From Dicyema japonicum (Eukaryota > Animalia > Dicyemida), in contig RDEW01000002.1 in assembly GCA_011109175.1 (NCBI GenBank), forward strand, positions 2,021,452-2,066,720: a stretch of DNA of 45,269 bases, written 5' to 3'. Below the pieces are notes generated by a model that saw only the letters and a list, made by a program, of their open reading frames with translations, ran no database searches and had not been told where the DNA came from. Positions 4,190 through 16,895 of this stretch are shown piece by piece. Position 1 is the first letter of the stretch, and every line of letters starts with the position of its first letter. The translations under genes and the position numbers were made by a program.

Positions 4190-5690
4190 ATATTTCACCA
4201 AGGTCCTCGACATCTTTAAATAATAAGTCATCTTTTTTAAATCTTATAAAAATTGATTTTAAGGGGTCCTATGGGTAAGTGGAACATTTCACCAAGGTCC
4301 TCGACATCTTTAGGTAAAAAAGTCATCTTTTTTACAAATCTATCGTTAATTTTAAATCACATTTTCCTATTTATATGTTCATTATTTATGTCGTTGAAAA
4401 TTCCTAATTCCAATATTTTTTTATTATTATGGTACATGCACCAATTTATCCGTGCGTTTGGAAATGACTTTTGAAAAGAGTTTATTGCTCCTTTTTCAAT
4501 TCTGAGACAATAACTTTTGGTTCTAAATCCGGAATGAGACGTTTAATTATTAGAAGCATTGTGTCATATTCATTTTCAGTTTTTGATGTTAAAAGACAGA
4601 ATATTATCGGAAATATCAACCATATTTGTCTCAACATCAGTAATATACCAATATTTTGGCGAAAACTGTACCCAAACTGATAGAATCTATGCCCACAACT
4701 ATAGTTCTTGATGGACTTGTGTGCTAAGAAGACCCGTCATCAGTGTCCGTGAAATAGGAAATTGAATACACTTAATTATTTGTTTATTGATAACTTCAGT
4801 TTCGGTTTATTGGGAATTAATAAAAATTTGGTTAGAAGACACATTATAAATATTAATAGTCTGTTATAAATAGAAAGTTATTTTTAGAATGACATGCTGC
4901 CTGATAGTTTCGACTACTGCGCTGGTGACTGTACCTTTCCCGGTGTGGGTATTGAGATAGTTGGCTGGCTAGCCCACCCATAGGGCTTATGCCTGCTTCT
5001 TAAAAAAAGCGAAGAGGGTGCTTTGGTTTATATTATTGGTATCGTTCGTGTACGTTTTATAAGATCCCTAGTTCGAATCCCATTTGGTGATTTTAAATAT
5101 AACTGACCAAAATTGTTTTAACGCTGTTAAAATCATGATCATTCGATCACCTCTTTGAAAAATATAACAGCTTTATCGAATAATTAATTACAAGATTACC
5201 CACATTGCAAGTTTAGTCCGGCAGGCTATAACGGAACTTTTATGGACAAATTAATCATATTTTAAGTGAATATAATTCTAAAAAACAATCAATAATGTAA
5301 TTAAATTAACACAGGCAACCATCTAAAGTGGACTCTGCTGACATTATCGACGTTGCGTTGCCTCTCACGATTGCAACAGAGATCAACTGGAGAATCCACC
5401 GGGTCTCACTTGCATCGTGGCTTTTTAATGTAGCTTCCTTAGAAAGCGAAGCGATTTTACACTTATTCCTCCAGTTGTCTCGACCATAAAAAAACCGACG
5501 TATTCATAAGTTTTACCATTTTGTTTCACTTACCCACAGGACCCCTTAAAATCAATTTTTATAAAATTTAAAAAAGATGACTTTTATACCTAAAGATTTC
5601 GAGGACCTTGGTAAAATGTTCCATTTACCAATAGGACTTGTTTAAATCAATTTTTATAAGATTTAAAAAGATGACTTTTTTACTTCCTCC
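4190..5690 (-). mobile_element. Mutator-like (MULE) element remnant with foldback-type inverted repeats built from ~88-bp subunits
   Basis: 4190-4345 and 5525-5690 are inverted copies (accaaggtcctcga-atcttta...aagtcatctttt...aattgattttaaggggtcct); internal minus strand gives FCLLTSKTENEYDTML...PKVIVSE/KGAINSFQKSFPNARINWCMYH, a MULE DDE-region motif. Confidence 0.65.
5338..5490 (-). mobile_element. CRE-like retrotransposon 3' end (5'-truncated), nested in the MULE
   Basis: VETTGGISVKSLRFLRKL...LQLISVAIVRGNATSIMS, the RLE C-terminal motif; sister copy at 13485-13655. Confidence 0.7.
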
Positions 5691-5829
5691 CCAACTTTTT
5701 GTTTTAGTCAGGGATTCTTTAAGCAAAATTTTAAATAATAAATTTCCAAAATTGTCCATATTTCAAAATAATTCATAATTGATGACGTATTCAACCAATC
5801 AGATACTTTTTATTGATGATCTAAAAATA

Positions 5830-6120
5830 TTTACTGAGAAGGGAGATACAATGGTGAAGATGATAAATGAGATTGATGAGTATTTCAACTTAAGAGGAGT
5901 ATTGAGAAGTCTGTTACTAATTTGAGATGTATGAAAGATGTGAAATCTCTGGATGGGCCTGAAGGCTATCGCTACCTCGGAGTGTTAGAAGACAAAGGAA
6001 GTAATGTCATGAAACACGAAGTTTTAAATACTATTGCTGAAAATGTGAGAAAAGGGATAATAAAAATGTGAGAAAAAAGATATACTATTGCTGAAAATGT
6101 GAAAAAGGGTACATACTAAG
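5830..6120 (+). mobile_element. R4/Dong-like RT fragment (domain 7 region)
   Basis: LDGPEGYRYLGVLEDKGSNVMKHEVLNTIAENVRKRIIKM. Confidence 0.6.
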
Positions 6121-6420
6121 CTTATCTCAAAAAACGTTGAGAGCATGTTGGTGGAGTTTAAGTATGGGGTCCACACGATCGAAGAAAATCTGATTACAGC
6201 AACTAATCACCTGGTGAAGTTGGAAGCCTAGTACAATAACATTCCAGGTAACCTGAGTGTGGTGGAAACGGATAGGGTCCAGGTCAACGACTCCTCTTCT
6301 AAGAAGAGAGAGGTCTAGGAGCGATTACTAATTTTGATGTAATTGTTTCCTGCAAAAATAAAACTCGTTTTTTAATGTAAATCATTAATTAATTTGTTTT
6401 TCTTAAAATATATTTTATCA

Positions 6421-6575
6421 TTAATAAAATATCCCTTTTTCCTTTTAGTGGGATCCTGACATGCCTTTTTTCCTTTATTGGAATATCAGTATTTCATGTC
6501 CACCACCAACTGACTCTTCAGCCAATTTGGCAATTTTTTGCGTTTATTATATTTTAATTATATAAATCAATAATT
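6421..6575 (-). repeat. Dispersed repeat, copy 3 of 3
   Basis: atccctttttccttttagtgggatcctga...ctgactcttcagccaatttggcaatt. Confidence 0.65.
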
Positions 6576-10120: not shown

Positions 10121-10716
10121 NNNNNNNNNNNNNNNNNNNNNNNNNNNNNNNNNNNNNNNNNNNNNNNNNNNNNNNNNNNNNNNNNNNNNNNNNNNNNNNN
10201 NNNNNNNNNNNNNNNNNNNNNNNNNNNNNNNNNNNNNNNNNNNNNNNNNNNNNNNNNNNNNNNNNNNNNNNNNNNNNNNNNNNNNNNNNNNNNNNNNNNN
10301 NNNNNNNNNNNNNNNNNNNNNNNNNNNNNNNNNNNNNNNNNNNNNNNNNNNNNNNNNNNNNNNNNNNNNNNNNNNNNNNNNNNNNNNNNNNNNNNNNNNN
10401 NNNNNNNNNNNNNNNNNNNNNNNNNNNNNNNNNNNNNNNNNNNNNNNNNNNNNNNNNNNNNNNNNNNNNNNNNNNNNNNNNNNNNNNNNNNNNNNNNNNN
10501 NNNNNNNNNNNNNNNNNNNNNNNNNNNNNNNNNNNNNNNNNNNNNNNNNNNNNNNNNNNNNNNNNNNNNNNNNNNNNNNNNNNNNNNNNNNNNNNNNNNN
10601 NNNNNNNNNNNNNNNNNNNNNNNNNNNNNNNNNNNNNNNNNNNNNNNNNNNNNNNNNNNNNNNNNNNNNNNNNNNNNNNNNNNNNNNNNNNNNNNNNNNN
10701 NNNNNNNNNNNNNNNN
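10121..10716. other. Assembly gap (N run)
   Basis: Run of N; other gaps at 31456-31463, 33612-34553 and 36790-36917. Confidence 1.
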
Positions 10717-10721
10717 AGACT

Positions 10722-11819
10722 TCACACAAAGGAGACAACAACAGCACTCATATCGTCTCTGAAGCGCAGAGATATCCCACGTGGAAATGATAAAAGTTTT
10801 TCAAGCATCGAGTTGTCTTTGTACTTCTTACAAAGAGGAATTTCAAAAAGCTTGGTAACGACATTAGGAGAACAACCGCCAAATTGTGAAATATGCCTTC
10901 CAACAATTTCAGCCACGTGTTCATGATCCAAAAATTCATTAATTCCACTGGTTGTCATAACAAAACAAATATCCTCAGGCTTGATTGAATAAGACATAAT
11001 TTCTGGTAGAGCTGTGAGGTACGGGGGAGACTTGTATATTTCAGGAAGCAATATATCTGCCTCCATGCCTCGAGTAGTCATGAAATTTTTAACATCAGTG
11101 AGGTATTTATGAGACCACTTGAACTGGTAGAACCCGAATCCCCGAAAAGGAATCAAAATATCACAAAGTCGACGGTTAACGAAGATTTCTTTTCTTTCTT
11201 CTTCAGGGACCGAGTTTTTAATTCTCTCGACTTCTTCTGAATTCTCGAAAGTATGAGGATTAGTGAGTTTAACTGTCTTGAATTTTCCATTATCTGCAGA
11301 AACAACGAATGCGGAACAATCCCCTGCATTAGCGACATAAATGGTCCCTTCAGCGATGTATGCAAAGCAGACACATGCCCCAGAAAAAGCTGTCAAAAAA
11401 GACTAATGGATAAATCAAAGAGGGTGACCTCAATATTTGGTTTGGAAGAAAATTTTTGGCTGATGCTTTTATCGAAGATTGTGAAGCCCCACGAAATTGA
11501 ATCCGCTATATTTAGGGTTACGTTTGAATTAGTCGAATCAGGCTGGGAGATCTACAGTTTTAGGCATATTTACATTAATTGGTTCATAAATTAATTCAGC
11601 TAAGCGGGGGAGAAGCTGTGAGCAAAATTTACCACAGTGATGTCCTCCGTAACCATTAACAACGCTAATAATGAAGTCATCTCTATTGGGGATCTTAGTT
11701 TGGATGATAAAGTCTTCACATATAGTATTGGACGGAAGCTGATTTGAAATAATGGATTTGACAAAAGGAGAGAAACATCTGATAATCTGCTCGTTCTCTG
11801 TTAAGAGTTTCAAACTCAT
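10722..11819 (-). CDS. PDP1: Pyruvate dehydrogenase phosphatase catalytic subunit-like PP2C, 349 aa; exons 11819-11574, 11551-11429, 11402-10722; introns 22 and 26 nt
   Basis: PDP-type motifs LTENE, SNQLPSN..ED, TAFSGAC, VANAGDC, RL..ILIPFRGFG..FKWS, SPPYLTA.PE, RFRDDMS.VVV; two GT-AG introns join the two ORF-track ORFs in frame. Confidence 0.85.
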
Positions 11820-11939
11820 TAAAATTCATAATTTATTTAAATTAATTATTATTAGGACAACCAACTGATATAAAATACTTTTTAATAAAAATTCATAAAA
11901 TTTTAGATATTGATAGATATAATAATAATTATTTTACAG

Positions 11940-13420
11940 CAATCCATCAAACCCACACTGAAGTTGCGACGGAGATTGCCAAAACAAAATCATCCCTATC
12001 CTGTGGACCGGACCGGATTCCAGCTATCATGCTAAAACAACTGGGTCCCATCAAGCGGTCAGAACATTTTAACTATTTCGTTTACCAAAATCAAATACCA
12101 AATATCTGAAAACATTCACATATACGCCCGGCTCTCAACCGGGCAGGACGAAGAACGCCCCCTTCTCCTATAGACCAATCTCTCTACTATGCTCGACCTC
12201 GGAGGTCCCTGAGAAGCTTATACTACGTTTGATCACCCCTGCTCTCTCTCTTACTTACCTACAAAATGGTTTCAGGAGCAATCATTACTTCGACACACCT
12301 TACCTCATTAACTCAGTTCATCATTGAAGGATTTGACACCAAACCACACCTCAAATCAGTCATATGATCTCTCGACCTTCGACACACCTTACCTCATTAA
12401 CTCAGTTCATCATTGAAGGATTTGACACCAAACCACACCTCAAATCAATCATATGATCTCTCGACCTTCAGAAAGCAGTCGACTTAGTCTCCAGAAAGAT
12501 TTTTACCAAAAATATTTGATCTATTAGTCAATTCCAACAACAAAATTTCCAACTTTCTAGCGGAAGAGAGGACGGGTCTGGATCCAGGTCGGTCTCAAGA
12601 CTTTTACCAAATGGAGTTTCCAAGGCTCTCCGTTGTCTCCGGGCCTTTTCAACCTGTTTTTGTCCGACCTGCCTAATCCGGAAGTCAAAAATACAAATGC
12701 AGACGATCTGATCATTGAAGCATGCGATCAAGATGTGATCTGTGCAACAAAGAAAACCCAAGAACTCCTTAAAAATGAAAAATTGGCTAAAACACAATCC
12801 TCTGGACGTTTCCGCTGAGAAGTCAGTCCACTTTGTTCACGTCGGTTAAAGACTCGAAAACAGATCTATTGACTTATACATTGGCAACACTAAATTCCCC
12901 TTCACAAAGACTTAAAGATTTTGGTATCACATTCGATACCCATATTGGAAAAACCATAGGAACCTGCCAGGGGAAAATTGGACTGATCATATCGCTATTT
13001 GGAGGTCCAATAAAGAATCTTTTTCCACCCTTTGGATCCTTATACAAACAATTCATTGAGTCGACCATTGCCTATTCCTGCGCTTCATGGGGAACAAACC
13101 TCTCATGGACGAACCGCTGAAAATCGAAGCTTGTCTACGCTACGCCAGTCGGCTGCGTCAATAAAACACTCGGAAAAACTGGAAGAATTATCACCCTCCA
13201 CTCTCAATCTTATCCGTGAAAATTGAAAGGGTTCCGTAGCCCTTCGAAAACTGAATTGCCTACCACAAAAAAACCATTCCACCCCTAAAAGCAAAAATAG
13301 AAAATACATCACGCCGGGGAAATATATGGGAAACACTGCCACCCGCCCAATCCGTAGCTGTGCTGGATCAAAAGTCCAACATTGGGAAAAGTTGAGGAGC
13401 TTCTTCAGAGTTGTCGGAAT
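11940..13420 (+). mobile_element. Degraded APE-type LINE (I/Ingi/Jockey group) RT
   Basis: Fragments SCGPDRIPAIMLKQLG, SYRPISLL, LLPNGVSQGSPLSPGLFNLFLSDLP, NADDLII, FGITFD, LYKQFIESTIAYSCASWG. Confidence 0.85.
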
Positions 13421-15615: not shown

Positions 15616-16895
15616 TTAAGTGATCCCGGTACGCCTCAACAGGATCGAGAAATTTTTCCTGTGTTCATCCAGAGTACCCACGGCTTTCCTGAATAGACGA
15701 CGATCATATTTCATTAGAGTTTGAAGAGGAGTGGGTTTTTCCCCCAAATTTCGTGTATTTGAGGCCTTTAGCCTTGAATGGAAGAAACGACTTGTTTCTT
15801 GGCCACACAGACAGATGAAGCCGGAGCCATTATTTTTGATTGCGGCGTGGTCAAGCATTGGAGGGAAAAGATCGGGGGGTAGATTCGTTTGACGTGCTAG
15901 TTTGCCAATTAGGGTATTGATCTTGAGTGAATTTGATATCGAAGCTCCATAGGCCCATGAGGCACAAGCGTACTCAATCGTCGGTTTTAGGAGTTGATTG
16001 AACACGACGAGGGCGCATTCCTGTGAAGGTTTGGACTTCAAGAGCGGTTTGATTATATTAAGTTTTCTGAGACCCTTTGTCATAACGTTCTTCACATGTT
16101 GAGAAAATGTCATCAAAGGGTCAAATGTCACTCCCAGGATAGTTGGACGAGTCTGTAGTGGTAAGGAGTCTCCAAAAATGTTCAAATCCAGTGTATGTTT
16201 TTCTTTTCTGTCCGTGGTGAAGATTGTATATGTTGATTTGTCCCTGGATACGGAGAGACGATTCAACTTCAACCAGGCTCCCAGGTCGTCAATATGTGAC
16301 TGAAGCTCTGATTTTGCTGTACCCACGTATTTGTTCCTGCTAGCGATGATTAGGTCGTCAGCATAAGTGAGAAGCATTGAATCTGGTCCTCCAGGGCAGG
16401 GTAAATCGTTGAGGAACAAGTTGAATAATGCCGGAGAGAGGGGCGATCCTTGATGGACGCCATTTGGTAGGAGACGGGACCTCGATCTTGCATGGCCTAT
16501 ACAGACACGTCCTCTTCTTCCGGAGAGAAAATTGGCTATCCATCTTTTCAAATCCGTCTGAATGGTGGTGTCAAAAACCTTCTTCGTGAGTAATATTCTC
16601 GAGACAGAATCGAACGCCTTCTGGATATCCAAGGAAACCATTATTGTCCGTAGATGGCGTTTTGGTACGTTGAACCCTTCTGATATAAATTGAGACAGTG
16701 AAGTCAAATGTGTCGTAGTTGAACGCTCACGTTTGAAACCATGTTGAAAGTTTCAGTCGGGCAAATGGGGTTTAATTTTCCAGAGTACGAGTTTCTCCAT
16801 TAGGCGCGATAATGCGCACGTTAATGAAATTGGACGGTAGGAAGAAAGTGAGGTTTTCGGTTTTCCTGGTTTAAGGATCGGTATTATAAATGAGA
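15616..16895 (-). mobile_element. APE-type LINE RT, 5'-truncated, one in-frame stop upstream of a 363-aa ORF
   Basis: IPILKPGK...SYRPISL, QHGFK..RST, LDIQKAFDSV, GVHQGSPLSPALFNLFL, YADD, ILGVTFD. Confidence 0.92.

Follow-up and report, generated by a model that had tools for sequence, protein, structure and literature searches.

A three-exon PDP-like gene in repeat-rich DNA

The window, that is, the whole 45,269-nt stretch of Dicyema japonicum DNA analysed here, has ~35% GC and ~3.7% gaps and contains remnants of LINE reverse transcriptases and few genes. The assembly to which it belongs was made from pooled specimens from Octopus sinensis and has 36.7% GC, 4.1% gaps, 48.9% LINE-rich repeats and 1.24% heterozygosity (PMC6736024). 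On its minus strand lies a three-exon gene for a PDP-like protein (Table 1). DNA upstream of this gene is repeat debris with no obvious promoter. The three long ORFs of a GC-rich island elsewhere in the window had no Pfam match at E 0.01.

Table 1. Features of the window and of the related locus L001 in the O. sinensis assembly
Feature	Position	Strand	Remarks
Coding sequence	11819..10722	-	ATG at 11819, TGA at 10724-10722; three exons
Exon 1, 82 codons	11574..11819	-	Met start, SNQLPSNTICED motif, VVNGYGG; from ORF translation and alignment to 12, then 150 PDP homologs
Intron 1, GT..AG	11573-11552 (22 nt) or 11573-11543 (31 nt)	-	Both in frame; from intron enumeration
Exon 2, 38 or 41 codons	11429..11542 (346-aa model)	-	'aF..lD..i' helix with Asp106
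Intron 2, GT..AG, 26 nt, phase 0	11403..11428	-	Directly 5' of S-F-L-T-A-F-S-G-A-C
Exon 3, 226 codons and TGA	10722..11402	-	AGDC, RGFGF, PPYLTALPE, TTSG, RDD; TGA at 10724-10722
ED, kept	11717-11712	-	E35, D36
N-G-Y for D-G-H	11649..11657	-	AAT GGT TAC; AAT 11657-11655 in VVNGYGG, TAC 11651-11649
GDC, kept	11324-11316	-	D148
Phe for Asp of RAFGD	11130..11132	-	TTC; final F of RGFGF
Ser for Asp of (T/S)DG	10947..10949	-	AGT; S of TTSG; PDP1 chain 3mq3_A residue 347
RDD, kept	10760-10752	-	D336, D337
TGA in frame with start	11826..11828	-	Three codons 5' of start codon; read from sequence
Out-of-frame ATG	11827-11829	-	10 nt 5' of start codon; opens overlapping upstream ORF
Assembly gap, 596 N	10121..10716	.	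Begins 5 nt past stop codon; 3' UTR hidden
Tandem duplication	12288-12469		89-nt unit, 98% identity; ~470 nt 5' of start codon, in apparent decayed retroelement
Short ORF	12833-13120	+	Resembles LINE RT C-terminal remnant, judged by eye
LINE-type reverse-transcriptase ORF	15619-16707	-	Pfam RVT_1, E 1.2e-23
U6 snRNA gene, first copy	37769-37869	+	68.5 bits, possibly degenerate; in tandem with second copy, spaced 45 nt
U6 snRNA gene, second copy	37915-38014	+	110 bits, full match
GC-rich island	38110-41128	-	47-50% GC vs ~35% elsewhere; three long ORFs of 365, 198 and 169 aa
Locus L001	1-12522		On contig VCDQ01002019.1
L001, short-chain dehydrogenase	1999-2634
L001, PDP-like gene	5336-6522
L001, M14 peptidase fragment	11020-11448

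To define the gene model, we listed every way of placing one or two GT..AG introns in the interval 11669-11349 such that 11819 to 10722 reads as one open frame. Exactly two solutions retain exons 1 and 3 as well as the conserved middle segment: the 22-nt form of intron 1 together with the 26-nt intron 2 yields a protein of 349 aa, and the 31-nt form with the same intron 2 yields one of 346 aa. The two models are three residues (ISQ) apart and are indistinguishable at the level of the DNA. The intact, two-intron frame of 349 aa put forward in the original prediction is thus upheld, with an equally in-frame alternative of 346 aa beside it; residue numbers below follow the 346-aa model. Animal introns of < 30 nt have been reported only in myxobolid myxozoans and Dicyema japonicum (PMC13644364).

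Several observations support the individual parts of this model. Asp106 falls in a column that is 98% conserved across the family in our alignment, which validates the frame of the middle exon. Intron 2 is supported by the closest relative of the gene, at locus L001 (see below), which has a 26-nt phase-0 GT..AG intron at the identical position, before S-L-S-T-A-L-S-G-A-C. The same relative also has a 24-nt phase-0 intron within the variable region that holds intron 1 of the D. japonicum gene. Furthermore, since the two proteins share the C-terminal end ...RDDM(S/T)AVVVSFV followed directly by a stop, we regard the D. japonicum stop codon as genuine.

A model with introns of 68 and 39 nt was rejected because it breaks the frame. 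A homopolymer error in the T-run near 11395 was likewise rejected as the cause of the frame shift there, given that independent contigs are identical over 11295-11573; the 26-nt phase-0 intron common to both genes explains the change of frame.

Relationship to PDP phosphatases

A search of PDB sequences with the 224-codon 3' ORF retrieved the PDP1 catalytic subunit (3mq3/6v0t, E 5.8e-32; 2pnq, E 3e-31), and the next-best PPM chains followed at E 2.3e-5 or worse. The exon 3 product matched the Pfam PP2C family (PF00481) with 78.4 bits (E 8.9e-22, cut-off 20.3). The exon 1 ORF alone had no match in Pfam or among PDB sequences. We then relied on the best 150 hits found by searching 1.84 billion representative proteins exhaustively, all of which align as PDP-type proteins bearing the same motifs. 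In this alignment, exon 1 pairs unambiguously with the N-terminal strands of PDP, with SNQLPSNTICED opposite SNQLxxNxPxED and VVNGYGG opposite V(F/V)DGHGG. The PDP-type motifs SNQLPSN..ED, FKWS and PPYLTA.PE align along the D. japonicum protein; the earlier claim that PDP-specific motifs are retained agrees with this alignment and with the PDP1 match. Judged by its sequence, the gene is a true PDP-family PP2C. Within the 45,269-nt window, tblastn found no paralog of it.

Among solved proteins, PDP1 is by far the best match to the D. japonicum protein (PDP1/PDP2, PDB 2pnq, 3mq3 and 6v0t), and the two have in common the PP2C fold and the C-terminal RDD strand. They differ in the distance from DGH to SGA, which by alignment alone is ~70 residues in the D. 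japonicum protein versus ~142 in PDP1c; the L001 relative likewise lacks about half of this stretch. PDP1c residues 98-151 are said to form the pocket for the lipoyl domain of E2 (PMC12146199), and most of this insert is missing, again by alignment alone, from both the D. japonicum protein and its L001 relative. It is plausible that neither protein would dock on E2.

Replacement of four catalytic residues

Direct reading of the codons agreed with the original prediction on both counts, namely that NGY stands for DGH, RGFGF for RAFGD and TSG for TDG, and that ED, GDC and RDD are retained (Table 1). Compared with PDP1, therefore, the D. japonicum protein has a replaced Asp and His in DGH, a replaced Asp in RAFGD and a replaced Asp347 in TDG; in the numbering of 3mq3_A, counted from our alignment, the first Asp of RDD is residue 445. 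The positions affected are 95-99% invariant among the 150 PDP homologs: in the best-150 alignment, Asp occupies the DGH column in 117/121 homologs and the TDG column in 143/144, His follows in DGH in 113/117, and the RAFGD Asp is present in 147/150. At six key positions, the D. japonicum protein reads NYDFSD against a consensus of DHDDDD. It is the sole homolog with four of the six changed, the other PDP homologs of the best 150 having at most two changed (several of these are fragments).

PPM1A bridges its two metals through D60, the Asp of DGH, and holds metal 1 with D239 and D282; its general acid is H62, which pairs with D199, the Asp of RALGD. The losses in the D. japonicum protein presumably map to the metal-bridging Asp and the general-acid His of DGH, and to the metal-1 Asp of TDG. 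Of the residues that would form a binuclear metal centre, the RDD Asp and ED are present, and Asn and Ser have taken the places of the DGH and TDG Asp, respectively. With four catalytic residues lost, canonical hydrolysis by this protein should be impossible.

Could the protein instead be an enzyme whose remodelled PP2C site still hydrolyses, weakly or in an altered way? One metal might be held there by ED, Asn55, the Gly56 carbonyl and Asp336, and Asn and Ser side chains are able to coordinate metals, if weakly. ED and RDD are retained, as is GDC, whose Asp is the counterpart of PPM1A D146. The latter is a third-metal residue, the loss of which converts PPM1A into a substrate trap (PMC8567228). 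However, metals M1 and M2 are the minimum requirement for all known PPM phosphatases, and TAB1 and PHLPP2, which have the PPM fold without M1 ligands, are inactive, these single-metal relatives showing no measurable activity (PMC12002173). Moreover, the general-acid His is now Tyr, and its Asp partner is Phe. We consider a remodelled enzyme improbable.

Independent contigs and related copies

For comparison with the gene we used Logan contigs of another sample, sequenced in four runs; these were the only runs matched in searches for the locus, with no RNA run among them. Contigs at single-copy depth (~37x, run X1) show 0 differences from the window over 11295-11654 and 3 over 10894-11316. None of the differences falls within the S, F or Y codons and none is listed at the N codon. 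Thus, in answer to the question raised with the original prediction, whether reads would restore Asp codons, independent contigs give S, F and Y, and the N codon is absent from the differences recorded. The contigs also confirmed the bases of intron 2, with 0 differences.

These comparisons bear on whether the substitutions or introns are artefacts, arising from sequencing errors or from chimeric assembly beside a gap. The proximity of the 596-N gap to the stop codon, the single N bases scattered through the assembly and seven sites in the gene at which window and contigs differ are what such an origin would lead one to expect. Against it, the contigs of all four runs leave the critical codons unaffected in the stretches compared above, and the position and size of the introns, as well as the C-terminal end, recur in the L001 homolog. 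An artefact is therefore very hard to credit.

The seven differences between contigs and window in the coding sequence are fixed; four change an amino acid (P309A, S184L, D47N and P44L) and three are synonymous, which gives a pN/pS of 0.36 that is not significant (binomial p = 0.17). The divergence of ~0.6% fits the reported heterozygosity of the pooled specimens.

Summed contig depth reached 7-13x that of the single-copy contig in patches at 10851-11051, 11253-11386, 11521-11587 and 11655-11855. The extra contigs in these patches resemble parts of the gene at 90-95% and differ by, among others, S272N, H280P and A146T; they would represent either paralogs or orthologs of relatives that were present in the pooled sample. 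Related contigs of higher depth have T at 10948, so that the codon reads AAT (Asn) where the D. japonicum copy has AGT (Ser). This suggests that the TDG site went from Asp through Asn to Ser (GAT > AAT > AGT), and the Asn in related copies implies that loss of the Asp preceded their divergence.

A motif-intact sister gene and the polarity of the losses

The closest relative lies at 5336-6522 of locus L001, on the 294-kb contig VCDQ01002019.1 of O. sinensis assembly GCA_006345805.1. It is 45% identical to the D. japonicum protein, groups with it in the tree with support of 1.0, and shares with it the three-exon layout (its own introns are of 24 and 26 nt), a shortened architecture and a C-terminus that reads VVVSFV before the stop. 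Unlike the D. japonicum protein, it has kept DGH, RAFGD and TDG, and it also has GDC and RDD. GC content at the L001 locus is about 45-49% (40-50% across the 12-kb stretch) compared with ~35% in the D. japonicum window, which indicates that the sister comes from another genome. Being compact and having micro-introns, this locus seems to belong to a second dicyemid-type organism, another species whose DNA is carried in the host assembly.

A maximum-likelihood tree built from 113 well-covered homologs places next to this pair (support 0.98) P0022, a canonical PDP-like protein of 440 aa with all catalytic residues and an N-terminal extension/presequence. P0022 is encoded without introns on 1.5-kb transcript-like Logan contigs (L002 and L003; SRR20225968 and SRR20225989). 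Because the L001 sister keeps its catalytic residues, the four losses are derived on the D. japonicum lineage. The D. japonicum copy has a branch of 0.73 substitutions per site versus 0.33 for the sister, that is, 2.2x longer, and synonymous sites between the two are saturated at this level of amino-acid identity.

The N-terminus and predicted localisation

The D. japonicum protein starts four residues ahead of the LSPxQV..IL..NE core (MSLKLLTENEQ), with Glu at positions 8 and 10, whereas canonical PDPs have 60-130 residues ahead of this core; compared with them, it has neither the N-terminal extension nor a presequence. The upstream DNA contains no exon that could be reached by a micro-intron and would add a basic extension. 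Candidate presequence exons with introns of 120-1400 nt were rejected, as they lie in antisense LINE debris and none resembles a targeting peptide; two candidates with introns < 100 nt were both trivial.

The first Met directly before the conserved core and the missing presequence exon, both proposed originally, are consistent with the in-frame TGA at 11828-11826 and with this upstream search for exons behind micro-introns. The absence of a long presequence is not peculiar to the dead copy, however. The motif-intact L001 sister has a basic N-terminal extension of 12 residues (MRSVGTVLRRIS) and also does without the long extension of 60-130 residues, so the absence is a trait of this small clade and is not tied to inactivation. 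A cytosolic location, rather than one in the mitochondrial matrix, is plausible for the D. japonicum protein.

We also noted that the out-of-frame ATG just upstream of the start codon opens an overlapping ORF (MNFNEFETLNRERADYQMFLSFCQIHYFKSASVQYYM, then a stop), and scanning ribosomes would need to bypass this ATG to reach the PDP-like start.

Possible constraint on the dead-site copy

Next, we considered whether the gene is a young, unexpressed pseudogene, a drifting duplicate of an amplified PDP-like family in which a stop or frameshift is yet to come. The long branch (0.73 vs 0.33) would fit, and a branch of this kind is also expected from relaxed constraint. So would the excess of consensus losses in moderately conserved columns (0.30 vs 0.57 in the 0.5-0.7 bin), the four of seven allelic differences that are nonsynonymous, the repeat-rich, gene-poor surroundings, and the run searches that yielded no RNA; the gene stands alone beside LINE debris and an assembly gap, which also counts against the reading that we prefer.

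Neutral drift is harder to reconcile with the state of the reading frame. Measured against GAY or CAY, six of the 12 bases in the four lost codons have changed (~50%), and had this much change built up neutrally, one would expect a disrupted frame; yet the frame of 346/349 codons and both GT..AG pairs of the micro-introns are intact. In a neutral simulation of the coding sequence, with substitutions alone and indels uncounted, the frame stayed open with a probability of 0.12 when divergence was 5%, and of 0.017 when it was 10%. In addition, loss of the TDG Asp is older than the split from the related copies.

The distribution of the substitutions is also informative. Outside the catalytic positions, in columns with a conservation of 90% or more, the D. 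japonicum protein and the L001 sister each keep 25/32 residues, such that highly conserved scaffold residues are kept equally in both. Where the sister keeps the consensus, the D. japonicum protein does so in 23/25 non-catalytic versus 7/11 catalytic columns (Fisher p = 0.057). Overall, the better conserved the bin, the more often the D. japonicum protein matches the consensus, from 10% at the lowest level of conservation to 78% at the highest. No single point is decisive and the statistics are marginal; together they speak for a scaffold that has been maintained while the active site in particular was dismantled, and we regard a pseudogene as unlikely.

A probable pseudophosphatase derived from PDP

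Taken together, the gene probably encodes an intact, derived and catalytically dead PDP-like protein, i.e. a pseudophosphatase. Loss of the Asp and His of DGH and of the Asp of RAFGD and TDG would mean that the binuclear Mn/Mg centre could not assemble, while the PP2C beta-sandwich scaffold and PDP-type surface motifs are kept, perhaps by selection. The protein might then act by binding or sequestering a phosphoprotein or partner without hydrolysing it, in the cytosol rather than in the mitochondrial matrix. A pseudophosphatase with a non-catalytic role was also the core of the original prediction, and this part is the best-supported reading, given the four losses, the intact scaffold, frame and splice sites, and the intact sister; the absence of a presequence, which had been joined to it, turned out to be unconnected.

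To our knowledge, PP2C-fold pseudophosphatases are few, namely TAB1 and PHLPP1/2. The D. japonicum protein resembles them in having retained the PPM fold (23/25 scaffold columns) and lost M1/M2 ligands (7/11 catalytic columns kept). TAB1 and PHLPP1/2 have the PP2C fold, have lost M1 ligands, are inactive in vitro and act by binding (PMC12002173). They differ from the D. japonicum protein in that they derive from other PPM branches, not from PDP, and have different domain contexts; they are also ancient and conserved across metazoans, whereas the D. japonicum gene is lineage-specific. A limited full-text literature search for PDP together with pseudophosphatase found no earlier description of a PDP-derived pseudophosphatase.

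More tentatively, and with some doubt, we postulate that the two genes represent a clade of shortened, presequence-less and probably cytosolic PDP-derived PP2Cs, specific to dicyemid-type parasites, whose copies in the D. japonicum genome have been repeatedly duplicated and inactivated by different routes (here Asp>Asn>Ser, His>Tyr and Asp>Phe). If so, a metabolic phosphatase would have given rise to a family of pseudoenzymes that is diversifying, binds phosphoproteins and has taken on a new role outside mitochondria. A dead copy and a motif-intact sister at 45% identity would offer a natural series in which to follow the change from enzyme to binding protein and the order in which residues were lost. 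The finding may also have a bearing on the regulation of pyruvate dehydrogenase in an extremely reduced animal parasite.
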